Shown here piece by piece: positions 1,344-16,691 of a stretch of 64,000 nucleotides of DNA. Positions within the stretch are counted from its first letter, which is position 1, and each line of letters starts with the position of its first letter. A program made the translations under genes and the position numbers. The notes under the pieces were generated by a model, which had not been told where the DNA came from, searched no databases, and saw nothing but the letters and a program-made list of their open reading frames with translations. The stretch lies in the IMG/VR virus record IMGVR_UViG_3300044568_003163, positions 186,001 to 250,000 of that record; one strand, 5' to 3'.

Positions 1344-1628
1344 TTAGCTATTAATTTGTACAACTCTTTCGGATGATTCTATTTTTGAAAAATCACCAGT
1401 TTGTAAATCTACAATTAGTTCAGTAACTAATTGTTTGATGTCCATATGATCGAAGTTTTGTAAACGATTCCATGAGAGTTCATGTCTGGATTCAATTCCA
1501 TTAACATATAACTTATAAGTCTCAGTCATTTGTCCATCTTCGGTCACGAGTTTAACATCTTGACCAAATTCTTGTTTGATACGCTGAGCCACTAGGTCAA
1601 CGTATCTTTCTTGTGTTTCTTTACTCAT
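1344..1628 (-). CDS. Hypothetical protein
   Basis: ORF abutting neighbours in operon. Confidence 0.75.
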   Translation of the reverse strand: MSKETQERYVDLVAQRIKQEFGQDVKLVTEDGQMTETYKLYVNGIESRHELSWNRLQNFDHMDIKQLVTELIVDLQTGDFSKIESSERVVQINS

Positions 1629-2488
1629 TATTCTGCGCTTACTGCTCTACCTACTTGTTTAGTCCAATCTAAGTCTGTTCTAACTTCAGTATTTTTATCT
1701 ATAGTTGCACATAACATAGTAGTGCTAATATTCATACCATTTGCTAAGAATTGCAAAGCTGCAATATCTTTAGGAAAGCAATGTCCACCAAATCCAAAAT
1801 CTCCATCAGGTCCTGGAACCGACCAATGCGAGTTACCTAATCGATCATCATATCTAGCATATTCAATTACTTTGTCGTAATCAATACCTAAGCCTTGACA
1901 TATTTGATAAATTTCATTTGCATAAGAAACTTTCATTGCTAAGAATGTGTTAGTTACATACTTAATAGTTTCTGCAATTGTAGAAGAAGTTTTAATGATT
2001 GGCACTTTAGGAAATGCCTTTGCGAAAATAGCTTTTACTCTTGTACTTCCTGGCCTTTCACCACCTACAATAATTCGATTTTGATTTTTATAATCTTCGT
2101 TTGCATTTGCCTCAGTTAAGAATTCTGGATTGAAAACGATATCTAAATCTTGATAGATTGAATTTAACATATTAGTAGATCCTGGTGGAATTGTAGATTT
2201 GATAACCACTATGTAGCCTGACTTATTAAGTGCTTTCACACATTCAGCAATTTCATTTAAAGCCGAAGCTAAAATTCCTAAATCACATTCACCTGATTTT
2301 TTCATTGGAGTTGGTACACATAAGAAAGTCATTTCTGTATTTTCTACAACTTCGAAAATACTTCTTACTGTACTGTCTTTTTTAGGGTCTTTGTCGAATG
2401 CAACTATATCATAATAGTTTTTCATTCCTTCTCGAACTGCCGAGCCTACAAAGCCTTGTCCGATGATACCGATTGTTTCTTTACTCAT
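1628..2488 (-). CDS. UDP-glucose/GDP-mannose dehydrogenase family protein (short, 286 aa)
   Basis: GIIGQGFVG NAD-binding motif, FLCVPTP, IKSTIPPG, FNPEFL and catalytic GFGGHCFPKD. Confidence 0.9.
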   Translation of the reverse strand: MSKETIGIIGQGFVGSAVREGMKNYYDIVAFDKDPKKDSTVRSIFEVVENTEMTFLCVPTPMKKSGECDLGILASALNEIAECVKALNKSGYIVVIKSTIPPGSTNMLNSIYQDLDIVFNPEFLTEANANEDYKNQNRIIVGGERPGSTRVKAIFAKAFPKVPIIKTSSTIAETIKYVTNTFLAMKVSYANEIYQICQGLGIDYDKVIEYARYDDRLGNSHWSVPGPDGDFGFGGHCFPKDIAALQFLANGMNISTTMLCATIDKNTEVRTDLDWTKQVGRAVSAE

Positions 2489-2673: not shown

Positions 2674-3084
2674 TTATTTTTTATTTAGTTCTTCAATTAA
2701 TTTACCTACTTTAGTTCTACTCTTTTCTCCGATAGGAATTGGATTTCCTTCTTCGTCAATATGTACAAATTTTATATGAGTTTTCAGCACTAAAGTTTGC
2801 TTACCAGTGTAAACATTATGTGCTCTCGCTTCAAGATACATTGTAATTGATGTATGTCCTAAAGCACTTGGATGACCATATATTTTTAGCAATTGGCTTT
2901 CTTTAGCCGGCTTTTCGAATACACATTTATCGATTGATACAGTGACCATTCGAGGAGAATCACACATTTGCATGGAATAACCTGCAGCTGCAGCATCAAT
3001 CCATGCAAGTAATTTCCCACCAAATAAATTACCGTGGAATCCAAGGTCAGATTTCTTAATAGGATGTGTGTTTAATAATTCCAT
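2674..3084 (-). CDS. Acyl-CoA thioesterase (hotdog fold, YciA-like)
   Basis: HGNLFGGKLLAWIDAAA and VTVSIDKCVFEKP motifs. Confidence 0.85.
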   Translation of the reverse strand: MELLNTHPIKKSDLGFHGNLFGGKLLAWIDAAAAGYSMQMCDSPRMVTVSIDKCVFEKPAKESQLLKIYGHPSALGHTSITMYLEARAHNVYTGKQTLVLKTHIKFVHIDEEGNPIPIGEKSRTKVGKLIEELNKK

Positions 3085-3737
3085 TACGATTTTACTTCTT
3101 CTCTATCTTCTTCTGTAAAACTTAATACTGCATCTAACTCTACTTTTGAAGCATTAACATTCATTTTAGCTGATCTAAAATTAGTTAATTTGTTTGAGAA
3201 GTTCATGTACATTTTACTGTTTGAAGCATCATTTGCGTTATAAGTCATAGCGTTATTAGCAGAAATACCCATATCACCACCAGCTTTAATTGCATCTTGA
3301 TTTGCTGCTAAGAACAAGAAATTCCATCCTTCTTTCTTTTTAGCTTCAATAGACTTGAAAACTCCATCTCTGTTAAATTCTCTACTTGCATTTTCCATAC
3401 CATCTGTAATGATTACCATTACGACATCATTCTTAGTTTTAACTTCTGCAATGGTTCTACCAATTGCATCGTACAATGCAGTCATTGCTCTAGGAACAAA
3501 AGTTTCACCTAAAATCAAGTCTTTTACATGTTTGATGTCTAGATTAGAATAATCTACTTGATATTGGTTGTCAAATTGTACTAATGTAAGATTTGCTTCA
3601 CCTTCTGCGGCTCTTTGTTCTTTAATAAATGAATTGAATCCATGTACGGTAGATCGACCTATGCTTTCCATAGATCCACTTCTATCTAAAACAACGATAA
3701 TGTCAGTTGCTTTGATTTTTTGTTTTGTTTTTTTCAT
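3084..3737 (-). CDS. von Willebrand factor A domain protein
   Basis: MIDAS motif VVLDRSGSM, MTALYDAIG, VIITDGMENAS. Confidence 0.9.
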   Translation of the reverse strand: MKKTKQKIKATDIIVVLDRSGSMESIGRSTVHGFNSFIKEQRAAEGEANLTLVQFDNQYQVDYSNLDIKHVKDLILGETFVPRAMTALYDAIGRTIAEVKTKNDVVMVIITDGMENASREFNRDGVFKSIEAKKKEGWNFLFLAANQDAIKAGGDMGISANNAMTYNANDASNSKMYMNFSNKLTNFRSAKMNVNASKVELDAVLSFTEEDREEVKS

Positions 3738-5014
3738 TAGTTATTTAGTTTAGCTTCGATTTTTTCATCAGATTCATACCCTATTAAAGAGAATTGTGAT
3801 GGATCGTATTCTGAAATATCGTCTCTTTCGTCGATATAATGATTATTTTTGTCGAATTGATTAATTTTTAATTTTGGCAGTGGATGACCATATCTCGTGA
3901 TTTGTTCAGCCGCAGCTGTTATATGATTATTATACAAATGAGTATCACCTAACATTCCAATCAACTCATCTGGAATCATATTTACTTCTTTTGCAATGAT
4001 TTCTAAAAGAAGTCCATAAGATGCAATATTAAATGGCAAACCTAATAGAGTATCTACTGATCTTTGAGACCACATTAACGAAATAGCTCTTTCTGGAACT
4101 ACTCGAGTCTTAGAAAGTTTCTTTTCGAACTTAGCATAGAATTCCTTTTCTTCAGCTCTTACCTTAGCAGCTTCTTCATATCGCAAAGCCTTAACATAAG
4201 CACTTTTAATTAGTAAGATTCCTCTGAGTTCTTGTTTTTCTTCAGGTGTACCTAATCGGTCAACTAACTCGGATTCACTTAATTTACGAGTATATAATTG
4301 AAATCCAATATGACAAGGAGGTAGCACCGCTTTATCAACATCTGCTACATTCCAAGCATTAAGTAAAAGTCTTCTAGAATCAGGATTTGTTCGTAAGTCT
4401 TTAATCAAATTAGCAATTTGATCGAACGATTCAGGTTTGTAAAATAAACCTTGACGAGCATCTCTATTTTCTTCATCTAAAGCATCAGAATTAAAAAAGA
4501 AATCTTTATCAACACCTTCCCAACTTCTCCATTGCTTACCGTAGATAGGACCTAAATCACCAAACATTGAATTGAAATCGTCGTTTGCAAGAATATCTCT
4601 TTCGAATTCTTCTACTGTTAATTTAACTATCTTAGGAATTGCAACTACTTCTGCAACTTTTTGTGCATTTTCAGTAGTAGGATTTGTGTATTTTTCTTGA
4701 AGAGATTCGACCCATTTCTCATATTTCTTATAAGCGTCACCGGTCCAAATATGACAATTGTTTTCTAATAAATATCTTAAATCAGTTCTACCTTGTAAGA
4801 ACCACATTAGCTCAGTTACCATTGTTTTAAATGCTAACTTTTTAGTAGTTATTGCAGGAAAGCCATCTGTCATATCATGTCTAATCATATAACCAAATAT
4901 GCTTCGAGTTCCTACTCCAGTTCGGTCACCTTTAAAATTACCATGGTGCATGATTGTTTGCAATAAGACCTTGTATTGATGGTCTAATTTGTTTGCTGAG
5001 TTTCCTATTTCCAT
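3737..5014 (-). CDS. thyA: Thymidylate synthase with two insertions
   Basis: DRTGVGT, TTKKL, ELMWFLQG, DLGPIYGKQWR, PPCH, QRSVD..LGLPFNIASY, GDTHLYNNH. Confidence 0.95.
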   Translation of the reverse strand: MEIGNSANKLDHQYKVLLQTIMHHGNFKGDRTGVGTRSIFGYMIRHDMTDGFPAITTKKLAFKTMVTELMWFLQGRTDLRYLLENNCHIWTGDAYKKYEKWVESLQEKYTNPTTENAQKVAEVVAIPKIVKLTVEEFERDILANDDFNSMFGDLGPIYGKQWRSWEGVDKDFFFNSDALDEENRDARQGLFYKPESFDQIANLIKDLRTNPDSRRLLLNAWNVADVDKAVLPPCHIGFQLYTRKLSESELVDRLGTPEEKQELRGILLIKSAYVKALRYEEAAKVRAEEKEFYAKFEKKLSKTRVVPERAISLMWSQRSVDTLLGLPFNIASYGLLLEIIAKEVNMIPDELIGMLGDTHLYNNHITAAAEQITRYGHPLPKLKINQFDKNNHYIDERDDISEYDPSQFSLIGYESDEKIEAKLNN

Positions 5015-5015
5015 T

Positions 5016-5225
5016 TTATATAAATTGCATTTGTACAGTTTTTAATTCAGTTCCTTCAGGAAATACAGAATCTCCTAAATACATTTGTATAGTTTCCATT
5101 TCTGCTGTAGGTGCAAAAACCATTGGTAGGCTTCCATTCATCCAAATAACCTCATCGGTTATTGGTGAAAGGTCAAAATGAACGAAATATTGATGAGTTT
5201 CGTTCCATAGTGTTTTAAATATCAT
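5016..5225 (-). CDS. Hypothetical protein
   Basis: ORF abutting neighbours. Confidence 0.65.
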   Translation of the reverse strand: MIFKTLWNETHQYFVHFDLSPITDEVIWMNGSLPMVFAPTAEMETIQMYLGDSVFPEGTELKTVQMQFI

Positions 5226-6100
5226 TAGCTACAATTTTTATTAACATATTCAGTTAAGTAGTCCATTAAATCATGTTCAGCTCGCCAACCTAAAGCTTTT
5301 TGAGTTGGTTCCCAATCGCATAAAGTAGATTGACCTTCATTCTTTCTTAATGGAGTATGAATCCATTGACCACCTTCCATTGAACAAAGTTTCTTAGCAA
5401 TATCAATGATTTTAATAGGTTTACCTCTACCTAAATCAAAATTTACACCTAGAGTTGTAACGTTAGATGCAGCAATAAGTCCTTTACAAATATCTTCAAC
5501 ATGAGTAAAATCTCGAGATTGTTCACCATCACCAACAACCGTAATGTCTTCACCGTTTTTCCATTGTCTAGAAAATTTAGCAACAACAGTAGCCCATTCA
5601 CCTTCACGAGGTTCTCTGGGACCATAAACATTATAGAAAGTACACATTGACATGTTTAAACCAAAACATTGTGCATAAGTTTTAACAATTCCTTCTCCTG
5701 CTACTTTTGAGTAAGTGTATGGAGTTAAATAAGGAGTTCCGTGATTTTTAGATGATGTAGTTGCATACACTAAAGTGGCATTAGTAATTCTTGCAAGTTC
5801 ACAAACTGCAGCAGTTCCTAGGGTATTAGATTCAAAATAATCAAAAGGCCTTTCAAACGAAGGTTGTATTCGAGCTTCAGCTGCTAAATGGAATATTTTA
5901 TCAAATTTCTTATCTCCGTAATGTTTGATTACATTTTGTACATCACCTAAAATATACTCAGCAAATTGATTTTGATAATATAGGCTTGCAGATTCAGATG
6001 ATAAATTATCAATACCATAGACTTCGTGTCCTTGTGAAACCAACATATCTACTAAATTTGAGCCTACAAAACCTAATGAACCCGTGACTAATATCTTCAT
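5225..6100 (-). CDS. NAD-dependent epimerase/dehydratase (extended SDR)
   Basis: TGSLGFVGS, FHLAA, YTYSK (YxxxK), FYNVYGP, GDGEQSRDFTHVED. Confidence 0.92.
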   Translation of the reverse strand: MKILVTGSLGFVGSNLVDMLVSQGHEVYGIDNLSSESASLYYQNQFAEYILGDVQNVIKHYGDKKFDKIFHLAAEARIQPSFERPFDYFESNTLGTAAVCELARITNATLVYATTSSKNHGTPYLTPYTYSKVAGEGIVKTYAQCFGLNMSMCTFYNVYGPREPREGEWATVVAKFSRQWKNGEDITVVGDGEQSRDFTHVEDICKGLIAASNVTTLGVNFDLGRGKPIKIIDIAKKLCSMEGGQWIHTPLRKNEGQSTLCDWEPTQKALGWRAEHDLMDYLTEYVNKNCS

Positions 6101-6156: not shown

Positions 6157-6180
6157 AAAGGCTAAATTAATTTAGCCTTT
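6157..6180. terminator. Intrinsic terminator hairpin
   Basis: AAAGGCTAAATT/AATTTAGCCTTT perfect inverted repeat between genes. Confidence 0.75.
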
Positions 6181-7310: not shown

Positions 7311-8027
7311 TTATTGAGGTCCTTTATTAAACCATTTTTTTTCAAATACGCTAGTCTGTGCATTTGTTATTTCATATTGTTGCTCAGGTGTTAAAGTCTT
7401 ACCGGTTTTGCCTAAATTGCCATCATGATGATTTACCACAGAATCTGCAACTAAGCAATGAGGAATTTTATTTTTCTGTAATTCCATTGAATAATCATTA
7501 TCACAGAACCAGAAAGTAAATTGTTCATCTAATTCGCCTAAGATATCGTAGATTTTTCGTTGTTGAAAAATACACCATCCTGCTAATTCGCCTCTTACTC
7601 GATAACCTTCAAATACATTTCCAGTATTTGTTACATTATCTCCTTGAGTTTGTGGACACCAAGGAGAAGCAGAAAGAAATCTAGGATGTACATCCATTAC
7701 TTCGATTATTTTAGAAGCCCAATTCTTTTCGTAAGTTAAATCGGAGTTACACAAAACTACATAAGGTGAATTACCTGCTCTTCTGCCGATATTCAAGTAT
7801 CGATGATATCCAAAAGGAACTTCTGGATGGATTGTTGTACATGAATGCATCCATTTGAATTGGTTATATTCATCGTAATTAACATCTTTATTCGATTCAA
7901 TCACATAAGCATGGAATGCAATATCTCCGCTATCAGATTTGAATAAAGAATCTAAACCGTCTTTGGTTACTTGAAGAAGAGCATCGTCTTTTGCCCAACT
8001 AATTATTATTACGTCTACATGTTTCAT
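7311..8027 (-). CDS. Glycosyltransferase family 2 (GT-A fold)
   Basis: VDVIIISW, YLNIG, VLCNSD (DxD-like), FWFCDND. Confidence 0.85.
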   Translation of the reverse strand: MKHVDVIIISWAKDDALLQVTKDGLDSLFKSDSGDIAFHAYVIESNKDVNYDEYNQFKWMHSCTTIHPEVPFGYHRYLNIGRRAGNSPYVVLCNSDLTYEKNWASKIIEVMDVHPRFLSASPWCPQTQGDNVTNTGNVFEGYRVRGELAGWCIFQQRKIYDILGELDEQFTFWFCDNDYSMELQKNKIPHCLVADSVVNHHDGNLGKTGKTLTPEQQYEITNAQTSVFEKKWFNKGPQ

Positions 8028-8037
8028 TATGTTGTAT

Positions 8038-8640
8038 TTATCGAATTAATTCTATTAGTAAAGGTTTACCAATATATGTAGTAAAATGAATGTTTAGTGG
8101 ATGTGTATAATGTTTAAGAGCTTTATAAATACCGTGCATACATGAAGGGTATTCAGGTCTAGGCGGTTTTGATTGTAAATAGTGACATCCTTGAATCATT
8201 GAATCAATATGCTTTTTATTAAGCCATATTGCAAGATCTGAAACAAATTCAACTTCTAGAAAAGGGTCATGTGGCGGGTACATAAAGTTGATTTTATCAA
8301 AGTCAATAACACCAAATTCAGTAACTTTATAAAGAAACTTTGTATCAAATCTAGTGACAAAAATGAAGTCAATATCTTCGGTTTTCATCATTTCCATACA
8401 ATGAATAAATGTGGTTATTTGATCTGTTCCTTGGTAAGGTATAATTTCAAGTTTAGTAGGCGAATATGTTTCTACTAATTCTCCAATATATGGATTATCA
8501 TAAGTACAAATATATGTACTCACTTCGTGATTCTCTTTTAGAGGCTCGATTAGATTTTCTTTTATATTATCGGCACATTGTCTAAAGTCAGCTTTTCCAT
8601 GACCATGTGAAATTCCTCTAAATAATATCGCTATTTTCAT
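8038..8640 (-). CDS. Putative glycosyltransferase-like protein
   Basis: MKIAILFRG N-terminus and FIFVTRFD motif typical of polysaccharide-locus proteins; paralog-like to 9091-9744. Confidence 0.6.
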   Translation of the reverse strand: MKIAILFRGISHGHGKADFRQCADNIKENLIEPLKENHEVSTYICTYDNPYIGELVETYSPTKLEIIPYQGTDQITTFIHCMEMMKTEDIDFIFVTRFDTKFLYKVTEFGVIDFDKINFMYPPHDPFLEVEFVSDLAIWLNKKHIDSMIQGCHYLQSKPPRPEYPSCMHGIYKALKHYTHPLNIHFTTYIGKPLLIELIR

Positions 8641-9091
8641 CTCTATATTTTTTTATATGATCGCTACAGATACCTGAACAAAGAGAAACATCATCGTTAT
8701 TAATTTCTGGCATAACTGCAATTGAATTTTTGATTGGTTGATTGCCTGGATAAACCCAAACATGTTTATGGGAAGTAAGAGTCATCTGATCTTCTTGATG
8801 CCAAAAGAAATTAAATTCATATCCGGACTCAGAAAAAATTTCGACCGCTTCTATATTTTTGCAATGAATCCATAGTCTAGTCAATCGATCGCTAAACCAT
8901 CTAAAATCCACTCTATATTGAGGTTTATCATGTCCTAGAAAAAGCTGCCACCCATATTGTTCAGTTTTGATATACCAAACATCAACCTCAACCTCAAAAC
9001 CTTCATTAATAGCTTTATCGATATAATTTGGTTCATTTTCATAAGACTCAAATTTACCGTTGGTATTTCCTCGGTGTGCAATATACTTCAT
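8618..9091 (-). CDS. GDPD/PLC-like phosphodiesterase fold protein
   Basis: YIAHRGN...EN...AINEGFEVEVDVW, LFLGHD, LWIHCKN. Confidence 0.8.
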   Translation of the reverse strand: MKYIAHRGNTNGKFESYENEPNYIDKAINEGFEVEVDVWYIKTEQYGWQLFLGHDKPQYRVDFRWFSDRLTRLWIHCKNIEAVEIFSESGYEFNFFWHQEDQMTLTSHKHVWVYPGNQPIKNSIAVMPEINNDDVSLCSGICSDHIKKYRDENSDII

Positions 9092-9744
9092 TAATATCTA
9101 ACTTCGTTTTTAAGGACAAAGCTCAAATCTGGTACGGCAACAAATTGAATACCTTGTTTAGCTAAGTAATTTTGAAATACATTTTCTGCGTTAACACATT
9201 TATTGATGGTTTCTTCAGTATAAAAAGATTCGTCAGGTATACTTTCAATCATCGTTTCTCGGTCGCCGTAAAAAAATATGTCACTAGTAAAACCATTCAT
9301 CGAAGAATATCTTCCATATATTTTTCCAGGTTCTACTTCAAGGTTTATATTATATAAATGAGACAAATCAAATCTGCTTCTTACTATAATGTCGTATGTT
9401 GAGTCAACCATTGCAAAAGTTTTCTTAATCTTCTTCCACATAAGTAGAGTATTTAATACGTTTACTCGAGTATCTGATGGAAATTGATAGTCAAAATGAA
9501 AGAGATCCGAGTAGTCTGAGCGTTTTTCTATTTCTAATTTAATCGGAGAATAATTTCGAACTAAAGCTTCTATGTCAATTGGATTTTCAATTTCAATTCC
9601 ACCTTGCCAAAATAATTGACCAGTTGCTTGATATTCCCATGTAGAAATAAAGAAATCTACACCAAGATTTTTAAAGTACGCAGAAGGCATAGGTAAATTA
9701 TATTCTAAGCCTCTAGTATGTCCAGATAAACAATATGCAATCAT
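9091..9744 (-). CDS. Putative glycosyltransferase-like protein
   Basis: MIAYCLSGHTR, FFISTW, YDIIVRSRFD, SDIFFYG pattern. Confidence 0.6.
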   Translation of the reverse strand: MIAYCLSGHTRGLEYNLPMPSAYFKNLGVDFFISTWEYQATGQLFWQGGIEIENPIDIEALVRNYSPIKLEIEKRSDYSDLFHFDYQFPSDTRVNVLNTLLMWKKIKKTFAMVDSTYDIIVRSRFDLSHLYNINLEVEPGKIYGRYSSMNGFTSDIFFYGDRETMIESIPDESFYTEETINKCVNAENVFQNYLAKQGIQFVAVPDLSFVLKNEVRY

Positions 9745-9752
9745 AGGAAATA

Positions 9753-10397
9753 TTATTTTTGTATACGATATGCAATTGCTACACCATAATCGTCTTGACC
9801 TTCAAAGTGCTTTTCAACTCTAAAAATACTATTATCTATAGCTTCTACAAATACGGTAGGACCTGGATGATAATTAGAATCATGGAATATTACAATACCG
9901 TTATCAGAAAGCATATCGACATATTGCCAATCATTTATTACTGCGTTTAAAGAATGCCATCCATCGATAAATAAAATCGAGATTTTTTCTAATCCTATTT
10001 TCTTTGCATAACTTTTTACATTAGATCGATTAAATGAGTTTTCCCTTATTGTGAAGATATTCTTTTCAGCATTATCGAGATATGTTTTATCGTCTAAATC
10101 TACACCTAAGTATTTAATATGATCTGGCTTAGATTGAAATATTGCTTGAGTAAAAGAACCCATTTCATTACGAGAAATACCAATCTCTAAAATACCATGA
10201 GTCATGTAATTTTTAGTGATTGATTCAACTAATTTATAATTCTGAGATGAAACTTCAGCTGAACAGGTTTTCGTAAAAGAACTCCAATCTTCGTTATTAT
10301 CATATCCGGTCATTTGAGGGAGAAAGGAAAGACCGAATATGTCAGTTTTATCTTCTCTAACTTCAACCGGATGACCATTTATTATTAAGTTTTTCAT
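9753..10397 (-). CDS. Class I SAM-dependent methyltransferase (Methyltransf_24-like)
   Basis: ILEIG motif I, YLGVD, ILFIDGWH, GIVIFHD. Confidence 0.85.
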   Translation of the reverse strand: MKNLIINGHPVEVREDKTDIFGLSFLPQMTGYDNNEDWSSFTKTCSAEVSSQNYKLVESITKNYMTHGILEIGISRNEMGSFTQAIFQSKPDHIKYLGVDLDDKTYLDNAEKNIFTIRENSFNRSNVKSYAKKIGLEKISILFIDGWHSLNAVINDWQYVDMLSDNGIVIFHDSNYHPGPTVFVEAIDNSIFRVEKHFEGQDDYGVAIAYRIQK

Positions 10398-10406
10398 ATA
10401 TTTGTT

Positions 10407-11594
10407 TTATCGTTTACCCCATTTTTGAATAGCTTGATCGTATTCTGGTCCAAATTCGCTATCAATACTTTGTCTCATAGCTTTTGCTCCAGCAATAGTT
10501 CCACCCGGATGTCCATGTATAGCACCACCTACATTTGCCATATAATCAATACCTACTTTAGAGGTTACCCATTCGGTTAGTCCTGGTTGAAAACCACAAC
10601 TTAATGCAGGCATAACATTGTGATCGTTTAGTATTTTAACTGCATCCAATGTTTCTTGCTCATCCCATTTATAATAACCGCCAATCATACCTGCATGAAT
10701 GAAATCTACTCCCATCATACCGGCTAATTTACAAATTACTTTCCAATCAATGTGGAAATCGTGATTTTTATTAGTAAGAATTTTATCACCAGATTTTTGG
10801 AAGTGGATGAACATTGGTAGATCTAATTCTCGAATTGCACGATAAACGCCTAAACCACACCAAAAATTAACATGTACTGAATTTCCACCTAATTCGTAGA
10901 TTCGTTTAACTCGATCAATGATGTAAGGATAATCTGCGTGTATAGAAACCGAATAGATTACATTTTTATCTTTAAGATAGTCCATAATCAAAGGTACTCT
11001 TTCTTCGATAGTACAGAAAGATGGATCGCTAAGGATTTCGTCTTCTTTGATAAAATTAACACCGCCTTCAACTAATTCTTTTACCATTTCGAGTAAAGTT
11101 TGAGCTGATATTCCAGTTTTCGGTTTAACAATTGCACCAAATATAGGTTTATCATAAACTCCAGTAAATTTACGAATACCATCAATACCAAACTTAGGAC
11201 CTAAGAAAATATCTTCTATATGTTTAGGAAATTCAATATTAAGAACTTGACATTTTAATACATTATCGATATCTAATTGACCACCCATAATATTAACTAA
11301 AAGATGAGAAATACCATCAGTTTTAAAGTTAATGTTGATTACTGGAAATCCAATCTTCACAAGACCTTCGTTAGATTGTAAATCTTCTTCATTTGCAATA
11401 ACCATACATGAATGATTTTCGAAAAGTTCGTTAGTTTCCCATTGATTTCGAACATTTGGATTTCCTACGCTTTGACCTATTGCGAGATTCCAAGAGGCAT
11501 CTCTTAGAGTTGTTTGAGATTTCAAAAAGTAAGTTACAATAACGTAATCTTCCTTATTAACTTCAGGTCTAAATATGTTTACTTCGTTTTCCAT
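10407..11594 (-). CDS. RuBisCO-like protein (form IV, RLP)
   Basis: GPKFGIDGIR, AIVKPKTG, GGVNFIKEDE, DFIHAG, PALSCG, GGAIHGHPGG; lacks loop-6 Lys334 equivalent. Confidence 0.9.
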   Translation of the reverse strand: MENEVNIFRPEVNKEDYVIVTYFLKSQTTLRDASWNLAIGQSVGNPNVRNQWETNELFENHSCMVIANEEDLQSNEGLVKIGFPVININFKTDGISHLLVNIMGGQLDIDNVLKCQVLNIEFPKHIEDIFLGPKFGIDGIRKFTGVYDKPIFGAIVKPKTGISAQTLLEMVKELVEGGVNFIKEDEILSDPSFCTIEERVPLIMDYLKDKNVIYSVSIHADYPYIIDRVKRIYELGGNSVHVNFWCGLGVYRAIRELDLPMFIHFQKSGDKILTNKNHDFHIDWKVICKLAGMMGVDFIHAGMIGGYYKWDEQETLDAVKILNDHNVMPALSCGFQPGLTEWVTSKVGIDYMANVGGAIHGHPGGTIAGAKAMRQSIDSEFGPEYDQAIQKWGKR

Positions 11595-11617
11595 TGTTAT
11601 TTATTATTTGTTATATG

Positions 11618-11938
11618 TTATATGACGTATTTGTCGTTAGTTTTCGAAGGAGTTTTTACTATTACCAACGAACAATCTTCTAAAAACTCAGGATCTGCGA
11701 TTTCATATGGGTAGATAATAAATATATCACCGGAAACAAGCTTTTTATCTTGAATTATCATGGTGCCTTCGATTAGATAGTTAATTTCTGTAGCTTCTTT
11801 ATGGTAATGAGTTTCCCATTTTTCACCTTTAACATGCTTTTTATAACAAACTTCGAAATCTCCAGTCTTATATGCAGTAGGTTCAAAGTTACCAACAAAC
11901 CATCCAGCTTTCATATCTTCAATCCTAAACAGTTCCAT
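11618..11938 (-). CDS. Cupin-fold protein
   Basis: HYHKEATEINYLIEG cupin motif 1; GDIFIIYP motif 2. Confidence 0.85.
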   Translation of the reverse strand: MELFRIEDMKAGWFVGNFEPTAYKTGDFEVCYKKHVKGEKWETHYHKEATEINYLIEGTMIIQDKKLVSGDIFIIYPYEIADPEFLEDCSLVIVKTPSKTNDKYVI

Positions 11939-12611
11939 ATAAATTGAGATATTTATTTAAGTCTTCGGGAGTACCAATTGGATGATGTTGATTAAATATG
12001 TAGATTCCAACTTGCATATTTTTCTCTAATATGTAGTTATATGAAGGAGCTACATAAAATTCTCCGTTTGTTCGATCATTTCTTTTTTGCATTTCTTCGA
12101 CAGAATCAAAAAAGTATTTTGCCTTTTTCCAATAGTGAAGTCCATTTGTTGCTATATTAGAAATAACTTGCTTTTCTTTTACTTCGGTTACTAGATTTTC
12201 TTCGTTTACCTTAACATATGAATTTTTGTTATGAGTTGAAATAAAACAACCTAAAAGAGCATCATATTTTCTTGCATGAGACAAAAATAACTCTCGATTC
12301 CAATCTTGTATTACTTGATCGCAATTAGTTATTATCAATTCATCTTCCATATCTATGAAATCTTTAACTAGATATGCAGTAGAAGCAGGACCTTCGGTTA
12401 TGTAATCTATATCGAATATCTTAACATCATCGTGAGTAAAATTATGAGACTTTTGTTTGATAATTAATATTTGATCGTCTTTATGATTGAAATTATCGAT
12501 GACATGCTCAATCATCGGTTTTCCTTTCCATGAGATAATTGGTTTAGGTTCATTATACTCAGATTCGTTGAATCGTGAACCTCTACCTGCTGCAGGAATA
12601 ATTATTTGCAT
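11925..12611 (-). CDS. Sugar-phosphate nucleotidyltransferase (NTP_transferase/GT-A)
   Basis: IIIPAAGRGSRF...PKP, TEGPAST, IITNCD, EKQVIS, NGEFYV, IGTPEDL. Confidence 0.9.
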   Translation of the reverse strand: MQIIIPAAGRGSRFNESEYNEPKPIISWKGKPMIEHVIDNFNHKDDQILIIKQKSHNFTHDDVKIFDIDYITEGPASTAYLVKDFIDMEDELIITNCDQVIQDWNRELFLSHARKYDALLGCFISTHNKNSYVKVNEENLVTEVKEKQVISNIATNGLHYWKKAKYFFDSVEEMQKRNDRTNGEFYVAPSYNYILEKNMQVGIYIFNQHHPIGTPEDLNKYLNLYGTV

Positions 12612-12620
12612 TGAATTTTT

Positions 12621-13421
12621 TTATTTTTTTGGTTGAAAGATTTCCACTACCGCATGTGGCCAATTATAGTACGATATACTTGCTTCTCTAGGATATTTTT
12701 TCATAACTTCTTCTGGATATTTAAGAGTATCGAAGAAAATATCTTCTTTCTCGATTACTAATACGTAATCGACTGGCTGCCATCCTGATTCTATTCGAGT
12801 TTTAGCTCGTTTTAATGCCTGTTCTTTTGTTCGGTATGTTATGTGCTTATGGCAAAAATTTACACTAATACTATTCATTGCTTGTGGTGGAATTGTTAAA
12901 CTATGTCCATTTCCATATACAAATTCTGGCTTCATTCTAAAATATCTATGCTCAGGAAATCCAGGCATCATACAATATTCTAGCATAGGCTCAATCAAAC
13001 CACCATTATTAGTAGTATTAGTCCAAGTTTCTCGTTGTGAAATGTGTGGAAAAAAATGAAGATTTCTAATCGTAACCGAATCAACATCAAAGTGATCGAT
13101 ACTTTCTAACATAGATAATGGATTACTTTCAGGGAATTCATCAGGATGAAGTACGGCTACCCATTTTTTATTAGGTGATATTTCTTTTGCTTTCTCTAAA
13201 AGAAATCCTCTAATTGAATCGTTTGATATTCCATGTACTACGTTTTCGTCTCTTTCATAATATTTTACTTCTGGAAATCTAGAACATATTTCTCTACCAA
13301 TCTCATCATCACTACCATCTAATACTAATATTGGATCGAAATATTTAGAGACTACATTTAAGTATTCTTCGAGAATATCATTCTCGTCTCTCATTATTAA
13401 AATTCCTACTTGTTTATCCAT
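12621..13421 (-). CDS. Glycosyltransferase family 2-like protein
   Basis: RDENDILEEYL, VLDGSDD, WVAVLHPDEF (DxD-like). Confidence 0.75.
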   Translation of the reverse strand: MDKQVGILIMRDENDILEEYLNVVSKYFDPILVLDGSDDEIGREICSRFPEVKYYERDENVVHGISNDSIRGFLLEKAKEISPNKKWVAVLHPDEFPESNPLSMLESIDHFDVDSVTIRNLHFFPHISQRETWTNTTNNGGLIEPMLEYCMMPGFPEHRYFRMKPEFVYGNGHSLTIPPQAMNSISVNFCHKHITYRTKEQALKRAKTRIESGWQPVDYVLVIEKEDIFFDTLKYPEEVMKKYPREASISYYNWPHAVVEIFQPKK

Positions 13422-13960
13422 TATCGTAAAGTGTTATATGTTGAAAGTACTTTATTTATACGTAATGGTGAAGTTTTAGAAGCACATTCATATGCAAAAA
13501 TACCATCAGCTGCATATATTCCTAACTCCCATCTAGTAGTCTCAATCAAAGAGTGAGAAACCACGAAATTATGACTATCTGTGTGATTAACCCCTATAGA
13601 ATCGGCATTCAATCTTAGTGTGCCATTAGGCCATTCTTGCGGAAAAGTTAAAAAATCGAATTTTACATTTTTTATGCTTTCGTATAAATCTTTATGTAAA
13701 ATTGTATCGTCGTCATTAAAATAAACAAAGCCTTTTTCTATTTTATCGATACCAAAATTTCGTTGACCGTTTCCTGAGAAGCTAGCTGGATCTTTATGTG
13801 CATATGGCTCACAATTTTCCGGAATCAAATCAGATGATGGTAATTCTTCGGCGTCAAAAACTACGATCCATCTATAATTTTCTCTAGGAATGTTTATGCT
13901 TTTAGCTATTATGTGTAGATTTTCTGGTCTACTACAAGGGGTTATGATATTCAAAAACAT
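13421..13960 (-). CDS. Glycosyltransferase family 2-like protein
   Basis: IITPCSRPENL, WIVVFD, QRNFGID, VYFNDDD. Confidence 0.8.
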   Translation of the reverse strand: MFLNIITPCSRPENLHIIAKSINIPRENYRWIVVFDAEELPSSDLIPENCEPYAHKDPASFSGNGQRNFGIDKIEKGFVYFNDDDTILHKDLYESIKNVKFDFLTFPQEWPNGTLRLNADSIGVNHTDSHNFVVSHSLIETTRWELGIYAADGIFAYECASKTSPLRINKVLSTYNTLR

Positions 13961-15597: not shown

Positions 15598-16200
15598 TTA
15601 CATTTCGTATTGTTCTTTAAGAATACGTTTTCCACGAGAAATACGATTCTTAACAGTATGAAGTGGTATTTCAAGTTTTTCTGCAATTTCTTCATATTTC
15701 AAATCATTGAAGATTTTTTCTTCGATTACAACTCGATAATCTTCAGGCAATGTACTGAATAAAGTTCGTAAACGAGTTAAATTATCTTCATGTTCTCGTT
15801 TGTCTTCGATTGCAACTAAATCATCAACGTAACTATCGATTGAATCGAATTCGATTTTAGAAAGTAAGTTTTTGTTTTCTGAGTTTTCGACATCAGTCAT
15901 AAAAGTTACTTTTCTCTTTTTACGATTTCGCAATTCCATACAAGAATGAGTGTATGCAATTCGATAGATCCATGTTGAAATATGCCATTTTGGATCGTAT
16001 GTGTCGATTTTATTGTAAGCAACGGTCATTACTTCAGACACAAGGTTTTCTACGTCATCAGTATTTTTTACGATGCTGTAGATGTAATTGTAAAGTCCTG
16101 GTCGAATCCTATCGTACAATTCTTTGAATGATTTCTCGGAACGAGTGGTTTTGAATTTGAATCCTAAGTCTTTTAATGAATCTGCTTTTACTTTCGCCAT
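15598..16200 (-). CDS. ECF-type RNA polymerase sigma factor
   Basis: Region 2 (DDVENLVSEV...YDPKWHISTWIYRIA) and region 4.2 (LKYEEIAEKLEIPLHTVKNRISRGK). Confidence 0.9.
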   Translation of the reverse strand: MAKVKADSLKDLGFKFKTTRSEKSFKELYDRIRPGLYNYIYSIVKNTDDVENLVSEVMTVAYNKIDTYDPKWHISTWIYRIAYTHSCMELRNRKKRKVTFMTDVENSENKNLLSKIEFDSIDSYVDDLVAIEDKREHEDNLTRLRTLFSTLPEDYRVVIEEKIFNDLKYEEIAEKLEIPLHTVKNRISRGKRILKEQYEM

Positions 16201-16289: not shown

Positions 16290-16691
16290 CTATCTTAGCT
16301 TGGTTACAAATCGACCTTCCATTCTTTCTAATGCTTCTTCTGGTACATTGTGAACATTGACACCTCCATGACGGTTTTCTACAATGATAGAGAATACCAA
16401 ATATCCATACTTTTCTGCTAATTCATAGTAAGGTTGCATTTCCCATTCCTGAGTAAATGTGTTTGAAACTACTACGGTATGTTCGTACTTCATAAGGAAT
16501 TCGACATCGGATTGGCACCATGCATGGGCTTCTTTAATCAAAGAAAAATCAAATTTGTAGTTTCCTTTTGTATCAATAAAGTACATATCAGCTTCTTTAT
16601 GGCAATAATCTTTATCACCAATTAATTGTTTAGCTAATGTAGATTTACCAGATCCTGGCAATCCTCGTAATAAGAATAAATGTTTTTTCAT
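16290..16691 (-). CDS. AAA_33-type P-loop kinase
   Basis: LLRGLPGSGKSTLA, EADMYF, AHAWCQ, VVSNTF, HNVPEE. Confidence 0.85.
   Translation of the reverse strand: MKKHLFLLRGLPGSGKSTLAKQLIGDKDYCHKEADMYFIDTKGNYKFDFSLIKEAHAWCQSDVEFLMKYEHTVVVSNTFTQEWEMQPYYELAEKYGYLVFSIIVENRHGGVNVHNVPEEALERMEGRFVTKLR

Follow-up and report, generated by a model that had tools for sequence, protein, structure and literature searches.

We find that the RuBisCO-like protein (RLP) of a jumbo phage, which is not a carboxylase, is encoded inside a conserved, mobile four-gene cassette that sits in sugar-coat gene clusters of phages, giant-virus bins, bacteria and archaea. The cassette consists of a nucleotidyltransferase (NT) of the sugar-1-phosphate type, a small cupin, the RLP and a miniature GDPD-like protein. 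This points to a building, not a recycling, role for this RLP, although the chemistry is inferred from sequence, predicted structure and gene context alone. The window analysed here is a stretch of 64,000 nucleotides (positions 186,001 to 250,000) of IMG/VR record IMGVR_UViG_3300044568_003163, a 294-kb jumbo myovirus contig. RLPs have been reported in phages before, in about 80 cases and with no function assigned (Jaffe et al. 2018, PMC6389311). What is new is the linkage.

Gene content of the cluster and residues of the RLP

Ten abutting or overlapping minus-strand ORFs make up the cluster (Table 1), and none of them needs read-through of a stop codon. The observation made in the sequence-only reading, a co-oriented run of glycosyltransferase (GT), NT, cupin, RLP, methyltransferase (MT) and GDPD-like genes, is therefore confirmed, and its residue calls for the RLP are essentially right. 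An epimerase and a UDP-sugar dehydrogenase had been placed downstream. The first is an SDR epimerase/dehydratase, but the next large gene is a thymidylate synthase and the NDP-sugar dehydrogenase, a short form, lies further on.

Table 1. Features of the RLP gene cluster and its downstream region (positions in the window)
Position	Strand	Length (aa)	Feature	Status
13421..13960	-	179	Short GT2-like glycosyltransferase	Variable accessory gene
12621..13421	-	266	GT2-like glycosyltransferase	Variable accessory gene
11925..12611	-	228	Nucleotidyltransferase of the sugar-1-phosphate type	Core gene of the module
11618..11938	-	106	Small single-domain cupin, probably a metal-dependent sugar(-phosphate) isomerase	Core gene of the module
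10407..11594	-	395	RuBisCO-like protein, not a carboxylase	Optional within the module
9753..10397	-	214	SAM-dependent methyltransferase of the TylF/Methyltransf_24 type	Frequent accessory gene
9091..9744	-	217	DUF7796/phrog_13607 protein, predicted GT-A-like fold
8618..9091	-	157	Miniature GDPD/PLC-like phosphodiesterase-fold protein	Core gene of the module
8038..8640	-	200	Diverged paralogue of the DUF7796 GT-A-like protein
7311..8027	-	238	GT2-like glycosyltransferase	Variable accessory gene
6157..6180	-		Terminator-like hairpin	Possible end of the transcription unit
5225..6100	-	291	Extended-SDR NDP-sugar epimerase/dehydratase	Frequent accessory gene
3737..5014			Thymidylate synthase
1628..2488	-	286	Short NDP-sugar dehydrogenase with no C-terminal domain

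Three of the ten proteins clear curated Pfam cut-offs: the RLP (PF00016, E 1.9e-33, 116 bits against a cut-off of 30), the NT (PF00483 over residues 4-180, 39.8 bits against 21.2) and the MT (PF13578, 27.5 bits against 26.3). The NT also matches phrog_3980 at 3.5e-52 and, over its full length, the NCBIfam models for the archaeal GlmU N-domain, AglF, RmlA and HddC, all below their cut-offs; its best solved relative is 4evw, an NDP-sugar pyrophosphorylase. The cupin has no Pfam hit, but it carries the G-x5-HxH-x4-E-x6-G motif, hits phrog_24762 at 7.5e-37, and has profile hits to cupin_2 and to small phosphomannose isomerase (PMI) structures. H44, E51 and G58 are invariant in its family, and H46 and E79 nearly so. 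Its AF2 model (pLDDT 97.4) matches best the Thermococcus ~110-aa PMIs 7zvm/7zvy and KdgF. The GDPD-like protein also has no Pfam hit. Its N-terminal HRG..EN..ExD..HD motif matches Pyrococcus furiosus GDPD at E 8e-5 in a family profile search, and H6, R7, N19, E35, D37, H54, H76, K78, H98 and D144 are invariant. The top fold hits of its AF2 model (pLDDT 96.8) are GDPDs (TMq 0.52, probability 0.96), and Atlas structure matches to bacterial GDPD clusters reach TM 0.74-0.78.

The GT assignments are weaker. The 266-aa protein matches PF13704 (Glyco_tranf_2_4) at E 1.1e-5 and 26.3 bits, just under the cut-off of 27.5, and has no relative among solved structures. The 238-aa protein matches PF00535 at 21.6 bits against 23.3, but hits the PHROG family 'glycosyltransferase' (phrog_22332) at 3e-15. 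The 179-aa protein has a weak Pfam GT43 hit (20 bits) and is GT2-like only by Atlas features: 77 of its 100 nearest clusters carry PF00535, and the fold of the nearest cluster matches GT2. The 217-aa protein hits phrog_13607 at 8.6e-12, and its Atlas structure matches viral GTs and the GT92, GT8 and WavE families at TM 0.6-0.83. The 200-aa protein hits the same family at 3.7e-4 over residues 74-186 and falls in the same BLAST family. None of the ten proteins has a TM-like segment, and no Wzx, Wzy or PGT-type gene is found nearby. The hairpin downstream of the cluster has a 10-bp stem followed by a T-rich tail; such sites are no more numerous in the region than in shuffled sequence, so this is weak evidence for a terminator. 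The epimerase matches PF01370 at 1.5e-44, and its nearest NCBIfam models, LegB, RmlB and GalE, are all far below their cut-offs. The dehydrogenase passes TIGR03026 (207.5 bits against 189.8) and has the PF03721 and PF00984 domains; its family has a median length of 286 aa across 10 RLP loci.

The best PDB matches of the RLP are 8dht (7.7e-40) and the MtnW structure 2oek (1e-37). In an alignment to 8dht and 12 family members, the following RuBisCO positions are kept and invariant: K175/K177 (as K157/K159), K201-D203-E204 (K183/D185/E186), H327 (H300), S379/G381 (S332/G334) and G403/G404 (G356/G357). The Mg/carbamate site and the P1 phosphate site are retained. N123 is changed to G105, H294 to Q266 and R295 to K267, and loop 6 is shortened and has no conserved Lys. 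E60, which had been read as replaced by Q, aligns to G40 with Q41 next to it, an error of one position. A functional RuBisCO that fixes CO2 or drives AMP salvage, as form III enzymes do, is very unlikely. Although the best NCBIfam and PDB matches by score are form III-type RuBisCOs, the protein scores 184 bits against a cut-off of 497, the E60, N123 and H294 equivalents are replaced and loop 6 with K334 is lost family-wide, and no AMP phosphorylase, R15P isomerase or PRK gene lies in the neighbourhood. The RLP falls below every NCBIfam cut-off, including those of the MtnW and OiaX equivalogs, and forms a clade of its own with SH-aLRT 99.

Linkage and distribution of the module

In a tblastn search of the window proteins against 80 viral RLP loci, the NT was found in 79, the cupin in 73 and the GDPD-like protein in 70. 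The MT was found in 19, usually directly after the RLP, and the SDR epimerase in 28, often next to the GDPD-like gene. No other window gene outside the core was found in more than 9 loci; each window GT was found in 6 or fewer, and the 179-aa GT only in the window's own locus. In a profile search restricted to loci with at least 4 kb of flank, the NT, the cupin (free or fused) and the GDPD-like protein were found in 64, 58 and 58 of 65 viral loci, and in 22, 10 and 18 of 23 cellular loci, the NT lying next to the RLP. The order NT > cupin > RLP > (MT) > GDPD-like is conserved across dozens of diverse loci, which rules out a chance association, and members of the DUF7796 family lie beside the GDPD-like gene in many of them. 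The NT and cupin are fused in at least 22 loci, and in others the NT is fused to a HAD_2 domain. The cupin is missing from a phage clade and from the SAR11 and DPANN loci. Many loci are near-copies of one another, so these counts overstate the number of independent observations, and viral bins can hold cellular fragments and vice versa.

The module also occurs on contigs labelled as giant-virus MAGs and in Pelagibacter, Patescibacteria, DPANN archaea, Nonomuraea and Azospirillum, always among glycosyltransferase and sugar-tailoring genes. The variable neighbours are FkbM and TylF methyltransferases, a DegT aminotransferase, a UDP-GlcNAc 2-epimerase, GT2, GT1 and an NDP-sugar dehydrogenase. The Nonomuraea operon reads RLP-cupin-NT-GT2-dehydrogenase, and the SAR11 island reads GT17-GDPD-x-RLP-NT..GT61. 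Culturable carriers include Nonomuraea rosea JCM 17326, Azospirillum oleiclasticum and Pelagibacter sp. Uisw_094.

One result argues against a pathway centred on the RLP. In a scan anchored on the cupin, the NT was present in 63 of 63 loci and the GDPD-like protein in 50, but the RLP in only 36; HAD was present in 16. The module thus exists without the RLP in 27 of the 63 loci, and RLP-less gene orders are NT>CUP>GDPD and HAD.NT>CUP>NT>GDPD. On the NT tree the presence or absence of the RLP needs only 2 changes, against 19.2 in shuffles. No position conserved in both classes differs between the sets with and without RLP, for the cupin, the GDPD-like protein or the NT. These unchanged partner residues fit an upstream feeder and a downstream tailoring role for the RLP equally well.

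A proposed sugar-activation role and its alternatives

The gene content, residue pattern, linkage, fusions and distribution are shown by our analysis, while every chemical step, the order of the steps, the role of the GDPD-like enzyme and the acceptor are inferred. With moderate confidence, we propose that the RLP belongs to a horizontally mobile module for the activation of a nucleotide sugar (or sugar phosphate), plugged into variable sets of soluble GTs, MTs and NDP-sugar tailoring enzymes. In this view the RLP would use its intact carbamyl-Lys/Mg2+ site and P1 phosphate site to enolise a phosphorylated keto-sugar, releasing an isomer or epimer without carboxylating it. The cupin would carry out a metal-dependent aldose/ketose-type isomerisation, and the NT would couple the resulting sugar phosphate to an NMP, giving an NDP-sugar. 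The neighbouring GTs and MTs would then build a glycan on a soluble acceptor in the infected cell, most likely virion proteins. The RLP would be an optional feeder or tailoring step and not the heart of the pathway, as sister modules lack it and some of those carry a HAD_2 phosphatase/mutase domain fused to the NT. The NT, cupin and GDPD-like proteins fall below every curated family cut-off, so their specificities are guesses. The role of the GDPD-like enzyme does not fit a textbook NDP-sugar route, and the loci that lack the cupin make the step order uncertain.

The interpretation given in the sequence-only reading, a biosynthetic RLP pathway to a rearranged or branched sugar that is isomerised, activated, methylated and transferred by phage GTs, is partly supported. 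The RLP is not a carboxylase, and its tight and repeated linkage to the NT, cupin and GDPD-like genes inside glycan gene clusters of viruses and cells argues for a biosynthetic, glycan-related role and not methionine salvage. However, nothing in our results speaks to a rearranged or branched sugar, the RLP is not the core of the pathway, and the MT and GTs are variable additions.

It is possible, though less likely, that the module produces a teichoic-acid-like phosphodiester decoration. The NT would make a CDP/NDP-activated ketose or alditol phosphate, as TarI, AbpA and LicC do, and the GDPD-fold enzyme would transfer or trim the sugar-phosphate, with the RLP, cupin and HAD enzymes only shaping the phosphate ester that is activated. 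The NT and GDPD-like protein are the most constant pair across the module variants, and in one arrangement HAD.NT>GDPD stands as a separate pair beside NT>CUP>RLP. In addition, the NT starts with a PAAG-x-G-x-R motif and has N-terminal IspD/TarI-like hits, the GDPD catalytic residues are invariant, and a GT-A-like DUF7796 gene usually follows the GDPD-like gene. However, the full-length NT matches are to sugar-1-P enzymes and not to IspD or TarI, no GDPD-fold enzyme is known to use an NDP-activated donor, and no reductase is consistently present.

A role in the salvage of SAM by-products seems unlikely. Here the RLP and cupin would act on 5-methylthio- or 5-deoxy-ribulose-1-P derived from MTA or 5'-deoxyadenosine, as in the MTA-isoprenoid shunt or methionine salvage, either detoxifying these compounds or turning them into an activated 5-thio/5-deoxy pentose. 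An adjacent RLP and cupin are the defining pair of the Rhodospirillum rubrum and Rhodopseudomonas palustris shunt (RPA2169/RPA2170), MtnW is among the best RLP matches, and a HAD enolase-phosphatase replaces the RLP enolase in other methionine salvage pathways, while HAD domains appear in the RLP-less modules here. However, the MtnW models score 131-157 bits against cut-offs of 409-514. The P2-side residues of the phage RLP are polar (Q266, K267, D270), and where MtnW has A and F facing the methylthio tail this family has invariant Q and K. No MtnA, MtnP, MtnK, MtnB or Dxr gene was seen in the modules, the source names for the cupin family are only generic, and the conserved NT and the glycan context are left unexplained.

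Similarly doubtful is DNA hypermodification, in which soluble GTs of the phage would attach an unusual NDP-sugar supplied by the module to modified bases of phage DNA as an anti-restriction measure. All the GTs are soluble, and the cluster lies among DNA-metabolism genes: a PD-(D/E)XK exonuclease, a thymidylate-synthase homologue with a large insertion, MazG and topoisomerase II. However, the ThyA homologue passes the thymidylate synthase equivalog cut-off (276 bits against 108) and is found near the RLP only in this phage (1 of 80 loci), the same module sits in cellular surface-glycan islands, and no base-hydroxymethylase, DNA kinase or DNA-GT family was detected.

Comparison with related systems

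The RLP very probably belongs to the form IV-like clade of Jaffe, Castelle, Dupont and Banfield (PMC6389311), a divergent clade on large Myoviridae-like phage contigs from many environments that groups with Beckwithbacteria sequences. In our tree, Beckwithbacteria and Patescibacteria rows nest among the viral rows. That study left the function open and did not analyse the neighbours; the module, the fusions, the RLP-less sister modules and the presence in SAR11, DPANN, actinomycete and Azospirillum genomes are added here. In the MTA-isoprenoid shunt, a DeepYkr RLP (5-methylthioribulose-1-P 1,3-isomerase) that isomerises by enolisation without carboxylation is encoded beside a small cupin methylsulfurylase. 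In our module the cupin precedes the RLP, the polar P2 pocket argues against a methylthio substrate, and the obligatory partners are an NT and a GDPD-fold protein in a glycan context. In methionine salvage, MtnW + MtnX, or the HAD enolase-phosphatase MtnC, is followed by the cupin dioxygenase MtnD, so that the same three folds work on one phospho-keto-sugar and a HAD enzyme stands in for an RLP. Here no other salvage genes are present, the cupin is half the size of ARD, and an NT is always present.

The NT followed by a cupin, as adjacent genes or fused, is the architecture of bifunctional type II phosphomannose isomerase/GDP-mannose pyrophosphorylases (ManC, AlgA, WbpW). In the GDP-mannose route a mutase acts between the two activities, and an RLP, a HAD domain or neither sits in the corresponding genomic position here. 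There is, however, no hit to the PF01050 or ManC models, the cupin is a minimal domain with an H/H/E(+E) site, and no α-phosphohexomutase gene is present. The apiose-catabolic OiaX and OiaT, form IV RLPs acting on a phosphorylated keto-sugar acid, are the closest annotated plasmid homologues, but identity is only 25-31% and the OiaX model scores 142 bits against a cut-off of 700. They are linked to four-carbon acid sugar kinases and regulators, not to NT or GTs, and are separated from this family by a long stem in the tree.

In the glycosylation machineries of chloroviruses, mimiviruses and glycosylating mycobacteriophages, soluble viral GTs and virus-encoded nucleotide-sugar enzymes act in the cytoplasm on virion components, but none of these systems is known to contain an RLP, this cupin or a mini-GDPD. 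The recurrence of the cassette in the sugar-coat gene clusters of viruses and cells points to a first building role, as opposed to a recycling role, for the RLP family, in which the RLP may act as an optional enolising isomerase that either feeds a sugar-activation pathway or tailors its intermediate.

Gene content of the cluster and its surroundings

The window belongs to IMGVR_UViG_3300044568_003163, a viral contig of 294,034 bp. It has 31-35% G+C and nearly all its genes lie on the minus strand. It encodes a myovirus-type tail sheath, large terminase, major head protein and prohead protease, together with both topoisomerase II subunits, PhoH, MazG, a sigma-70 family protein and a PD-(D/E)XK exonuclease, so it is a jumbo tailed phage. 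A megablast search with 12.5 kb and a tblastn search with the RuBisCO-like protein (RLP) against 50,697 GenBank phage records found no close relative, and no isolate phage in that set carries this RLP.

The cluster described in the sequence-only reading is present: between 13960 and 7311 there are ten abutting or overlapping minus-strand ORFs, none of which requires a stop codon to be read through. That reading also placed a UDP-sugar dehydrogenase downstream. This gene is real, but it lies about 5 kb away and is not the 425-aa gene. The cluster is followed by an extended-SDR epimerase/dehydratase and a thymidylate synthase homologue, then by a VWA protein and a thioesterase, and only then by a short NDP-sugar dehydrogenase.

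Features of the window and of one related locus, with the evidence on which each assignment rests
Feature	Position	Strand	Evidence	Strength of assignment
GT	13421-13960	-	GT2-like by Atlas	weak
GT	12621-13421	-	just below the Pfam cut-off	weak
NT (nucleotidyltransferase)	11925-12611	-	PF00483, 39.8 bits	above cut-off
Cupin	11618-11938	-	no Pfam hit; exact cupin motif 1; profile hits to cupin_2 and small PMI structures; AF2 model, pLDDT 97.4, matching Thermococcus ~110-aa phosphomannose isomerases and KdgF	good
RLP	10407-11594	-	PF00016, E 1.9e-33, 116.4 bits against a cut-off of 30.1, residues 136-381	above cut-off
MT (methyltransferase)	9753-10397	-	PF13578, 27.5 bits	above cut-off
DUF7796/phrog_13607 protein	9091-9744	-	predicted GT-A-like fold	moderate
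GDPD-like protein	8618-9091	-	no Pfam hit; N-terminal HRG..EN..ExD..HD block aligns to P. furiosus GDPD at E 8e-5; AF2 model, pLDDT 96.8, best fold hits GDPDs at TMq 0.52; Atlas structure links to bacterial GDPD clusters	good, but distant and miniaturised
DUF7796/phrog_13607 protein	8038-8640	-	predicted GT-A-like fold	moderate
GT	7311-8027	-	just below the Pfam cut-off; PHROG glycosyltransferase family at 3e-15	moderate
Extended-SDR epimerase/dehydratase	5225-6100
Thymidylate synthase homologue, 425 aa	3737-5014	-	passes the TIGR03284 cut-off
4HBT-family thioesterase (136 aa) and VWA-domain protein (217 aa)	2674-3737	-	phrog_7371 for the VWA-domain protein
Short NDP-sugar dehydrogenase, 286 aa	1628-2488	-	Rossmann and central domains; no recognisable C-terminal domain
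94-aa ORF abutting the dehydrogenase	1344-1628	-	matches no family
Sigma-70 family (ECF-like, regions 2 and 4) protein and small AAA_33 P-loop kinase-like protein	15598-16200 and 16290-16691	-
1,942-aa ORF	19738-25566	-	no Pfam or PHROG hit
174-bp repeat in the 1,942-aa ORF, 2.5 copies	22249-22677
Example of a long ORF opposite the 1,942-aa ORF	21227-23047	opposite to the 1,942-aa ORF
600-aa GHMP-kinase/NTP-transferase fusion of the Woesearchaeota locus L098	8064-9866 of L098	-

The thymidylate synthase homologue is about 140 residues longer than usual, and its match is split into 2-4 stretches, which implies a large internal insertion. Its position might suggest that the cluster serves DNA hypermodification. 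This possibility is weakened because the protein passes the thymidylate-synthase equivalog cut-off and is not linked elsewhere to the genes discussed below, and because those genes also occur in cellular glycan islands. The short length of the NDP-sugar dehydrogenase is conserved in 10 viral loci, and the abutting 94-aa ORF starts with the same MSKET residues. The sigma-70 family protein and the AAA_33 protein lie just upstream of the cluster, where a regulatory link to the glycan genes is possible. A promoter scan showed no enrichment over shuffled sequence. The 1,942-aa ORF has about 25 hydrophobic 19-residue segments and coincides with a switch to positive AT skew; the long ORFs on the opposite strand are probably shadows of it. 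It may encode a tape-measure-like or membrane-active giant protein.

The RuBisCO-like protein and its predicted partners

The RLP is a member of the RuBisCO large-subunit superfamily, with 99 RuBisCO/RLP matches in the PDB. Its best solved relatives are 8dht (E 7.7e-40) and the G. kaustophilus MtnW enolase 2oek (1e-37). It is, however, a member of none of NCBI's curated families: the type III RuBisCO model (rubisco_III) scores 184 bits against a cut-off of 497, the MtnW models NF007095 and TIGR03332 score 157 and 131 bits against cut-offs of 409 and 514, and the OiaX model scores 142 bits against a cut-off of 700. No four-carbon acid sugar kinase gene of the kind linked to OiaX is found beside it. 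A search of plasmids returned only distant OiaX-type, form I and other RLPs at 31% identity or less, which we used as outgroups.

We compared catalytic residues in spinach numbering, using the alignment to 8dht and an alignment of 12 family members at 53-81% identity. The residues K175/K177 (K157/K159 in the phage protein), K201, D203 and E204 (K183, D185 and E186), H327 (H300), S379/G381 (S332/G334) and G403/G404 (G356/G357) are invariant in the family. In contrast, E60 is replaced family-wide by G40 within an invariant GQSxGNP motif, T65/W66 by N45/P46, N123 by G105 within GGQxD, and H294, R295 and H298 by Q266, K267 and D270 within HFQKSGD, while loop 6 is shortened and has no conserved lysine. 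The residue calls of the sequence-only reading, which had E60, N123, H294 and K334 lost and the lysine, metal-site, H327 and S379 equivalents kept, are therefore right apart from an off-by-one at E60. The protein lacks the full catalytic set of form I-III enzymes but keeps the carbamyl-Lys/Mg site, as form IV RLPs do, and the residue pattern excludes CO2 fixation. We infer that the enolisation machinery (carbamyl-Lys, Mg2+ and K175) and the P1 phosphate cradle are intact and that the carboxylation and hydration residues are gone. We also infer that the far (P2) end of the pocket is polar or cationic, with Q266 and K267 standing where MtnW has A and F, and is not hydrophobic as in MtnW. The short loop 6 suggests a more open site.

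The small cupin carries the G-x5-HxH-x3,4-E-x6-G motif of its superfamily, and 205 PDB cupin matches have E at or below 1e-3. A profile search with the cupin against 5.8 billion proteins, made to find a methylsulfurylase or PMI name among its relatives, returned only generic source names. The NT followed by a cupin recalls type II PMI/GMP (ManC-like) enzymes, and the predicted cupin fold is nearest to small PMIs, although there is no hit to PF01050 or to a ManC model, and any specificity can only be inferred. In the GDPD-like protein H6, R7, E35, D37 and H54 are invariant, but its best fold hits, which are GDPDs, reach only TMq 0.52, and the protein is about 100 residues shorter.

Conserved linkage and distribution of the module

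We retrieved 80 viral loci carrying relatives of the RLP at 52-100% identity and compared every window protein with them. A homologue of the NT was found in 79 loci, of the cupin in 73, of the GDPD-like protein in 70, of the epimerase in 28 and of the MT in 19, while every other window gene had a homologue in 9 or fewer. The order NT > cupin > RLP > (MT) > GDPD-like recurs again and again. With profile HMMs, and only in loci with at least 4 kb on both sides, the counts are NT 64, cupin 58 and GDPD-like 58 of 65. The variable genes around this core are glycan genes, namely FkbM- and TylF-type methyltransferases, a DegT aminotransferase, a UDP-GlcNAc 2-epimerase, GT2 and GT1 enzymes and the short NDP-sugar dehydrogenase. 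Pfam searches with six frequent accessory families (f9, f10, f16, f20, f21 and f22) gave no hits.

In at least 22 loci the NT and the cupin form one polypeptide with the NT at the N-terminus, which is the domain order of bifunctional PMI/GDP-mannose pyrophosphorylases. The module with this fusion occurs on contigs that IMG/VR labels as giant-virus MAGs (GVMAG; viral loci L041-L046, L049-L051, L055-L061, L065, L068 and L076). These contigs have mixed gene orientation and may be either Nucleocytoviricota or misbinned jumbo phages. In other loci a HAD_2 domain, the family of β-phosphoglucomutases and sugar phosphatases, is fused to the NT. Such HAD_2-NT proteins of about 455-465 aa, and one NT-HAD fusion, are found in loci L151, L154, L179, L187-L193, L005/L006, L008, L014, L054 and L026, either in RLP-less modules or as a second NT next to RLP modules.

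The RLP family is large, with 2,651 hits at 90% clustering, many of them from Tara and other aquatic metagenomes. A scan of one genome per species found 42 cellular loci, in Candidatus Pelagibacter (one complete genome and many single-cell genomes), in Patescibacteria including Beckwithbacteria and Saccharibacteria, in Woesearchaeota, Nanoarchaeota and Micrarchaeota, in Verrucomicrobiota, Elusimicrobia and Bacteroidota, and in the cultured Nonomuraea rosea and Azospirillum oleiclasticum. Among 23 well-flanked cellular loci the NT is adjacent in 22, the GDPD-like gene in 18 and the cupin in 10. The contexts are again glycan islands. In Nonomuraea rosea JCM 17326 (loci L116/L123, contig BAABDQ010000069) the genes GDPD / RLP-cupin-NT-GT2-dehydrogenase sit on an island crowded with phage-integrase and transposase genes, next to a radical SAM gene and an SDR, which suggests recent mobility in an actinomycete. 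In a SAR11 single-cell genome the island after lepA reads GT17, GDPD-like, a 246-aa protein without a Pfam hit, RLP, NT ... GT61. The Woesearchaeota locus L098 has RLP-NT-FkbM with the GHMP-kinase/NTP-transferase fusion lying divergently beside it, and this fusion looks like a second, salvage-type sugar-activation enzyme in the same archaeal island.

In a maximum-likelihood tree all 119 viral and cellular sequences form one clade (SH-aLRT 99), separated by a very long stem from OiaX-type RLPs and form I RuBisCO. The deepest branches are cellular, first Azospirillum, then Nonomuraea with Elusimicrobia, then a SAR11 and DPANN clade, although the long branches make this rooting tentative. The viral sequences form a crown with cellular rows scattered inside it, including the Beckwithbacteria locus L089. 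By its description this matches the phage RLP clade of Jaffe et al. 2018, a divergent form IV-like clade on large phage contigs that groups with Beckwithbacteria. It may also correspond to the unassigned GOS RuBisCO groups, but the equation with 'IV-GOS' remains a guess.

A search that started from the cupin instead of the RLP changes this picture. At least 558 viral stretches encode the cupin, and among the best 80 loci the 63 with good flanks have the NT in 63, the GDPD-like gene in 50, the RLP in 36 and a HAD domain in 16. The RLP-less loci read NT > cupin > GDPD-like or HAD.NT > cupin > NT > GDPD-like, that is, the RLP slot is simply closed up. In the sister modules reading NT > cupin > GDPD-like (viral loci L137, L165, L171, L182, L185, L194, L197, L198, L201 and L204) the cupins are as similar to that of the window (58-67% identity) as those of RLP-bearing loci. 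On a tree of the NT domains, rooted at the midpoint only, RLP presence needs two changes, against 19.2 in shuffles, and the two RLP-less clades nest among RLP-bearing lineages. The RLP and HAD occur together in 5 cases, the RLP alone in 30, HAD alone in 10 and neither in 15, which is suggestive of alternation, but near-identical loci inflate these counts. No position conserved in both classes differs between RLP-bearing and RLP-less versions of the cupin, the GDPD-like protein or the NT. This argues against the idea that the RLP changes what its partners handle, and the three partners seem to do the same chemistry whether or not it is there. The RLP is therefore an add-on, which either feeds the module from an additional metabolite pool or tailors the product afterwards. 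A cupin-less variant, NT > RLP > GDPD-like, also exists in one phage clade and in SAR11 and DPANN.

Possible roles of the module

The gene content, the residue pattern, the linkage, the fusions and the distribution are direct observations, whereas it is our inference from them that the module makes a nucleotide-activated sugar or sugar phosphate for the neighbouring transferases. The closest formal analogy is the GDP-mannose route, with an isomerase (here the cupin), a phosphate-shifting step and a pyrophosphorylase (here the NT); the middle step would be supplied by the host, by a HAD-type enzyme or by the RLP. The only chemistry documented for RLPs is enolisation-based isomerisation, enolase or (trans/de)carboxylase action on phospho-keto-sugars. 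The R. rubrum enzyme effectively swaps which end of the chain carries the phosphate relative to the carbonyl, which makes a mutase-equivalent RLP conceivable, but this is speculation. The GDPD-fold enzyme has all the catalytic residues of a phosphodiesterase and might release the entry substrate from a phosphodiester, open a cyclic phosphate, or transfer or trim a sugar-phosphate. A teichoic-like phosphodiester decoration is a variant of the same idea and cannot be excluded. A role in salvage of SAM by-products fits the pairing of RLP and cupin, but it does not fit the polar pocket, the sub-threshold MtnW scores, the absence of salvage genes or the constant NT. The one feature seen to be shared with the DeepYkr RLPs (MTRu-1-P 1,3-isomerases) of R. 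rubrum and R. palustris, which have an adjacent cupin methylsulfurylase, is the RLP-cupin adjacency. None of the ten cluster proteins has a TM-like segment, and there is no flippase, polymerase or phosphoglycosyl-transferase nearby. The acceptor in the phage is therefore probably soluble, meaning virion proteins or, less likely, DNA.

A more far-reaching possibility, which we consider unlikely although the evidence does not rule it out, is that the RLP is the first anabolic member of its superfamily and acts as a mutase-equivalent. By successive enolisations, the reverse of the R. rubrum 1,3-isomerase logic, it would walk the carbonyl of a pentulose-5-phosphate, or of a related ketose phosphate or bisphosphate, along the chain, leaving the phosphate next to the carbonyl. 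The cupin would then close this ketose-1-phosphate to an aldofuranose-1-phosphate, which the NT would activate. This would be a phosphomutase-free route to an unusual NDP-pentofuranose or related sugar, shared by jumbo phages, giant viruses, SAR11, CPR bacteria and DPANN archaea, with HAD-type mutases or host enzymes filling the same slot in the RLP-less modules.

The sequence-only reading proposed that the RLP works biosynthetically in making an activated sugar for phage glycosyltransferases. This is supported in part: a biosynthetic, glycan-linked RLP is well supported by context, but the specific chemistry remains conjectural and the RLP is less central than was proposed. Phage RLPs and virus-encoded sugar-nucleotide pathways are both known. 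In full-text literature searches we found no paper linking an RLP to an NT, a cupin, GDPD or nucleotide sugars, and no description of the conserved NT-cupin-RLP-GDPD module, its fusions, its RLP-less sisters or its spread through SAR11, CPR, DPANN and cultured bacteria. The finding is a strong, directly testable lead and not a solved pathway.

Every RLP function known so far is catabolic or salvage, namely methionine salvage, the MTA shunt, and the breakdown of apiose, hamamelose or tetronate, and the large phage clade has had no function assigned since it was reported in 2018. The linkage found here brings that question within reach of the bench, as it involves four small soluble proteins and a short list of sugar phosphates and NTPs, with culturable carriers and with natural RLP-bearing and RLP-less versions of the same module as controls. 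If the module makes a new activated sugar, a biosynthetic branch would be added to the evolution of the RuBisCO superfamily, and a widespread glycan building block would be identified that is used by abundant ocean bacteria (SAR11), by ultra-small CPR and DPANN cells and by their viruses. It would also become clearer how jumbo phages and giant viruses decorate themselves or their hosts.
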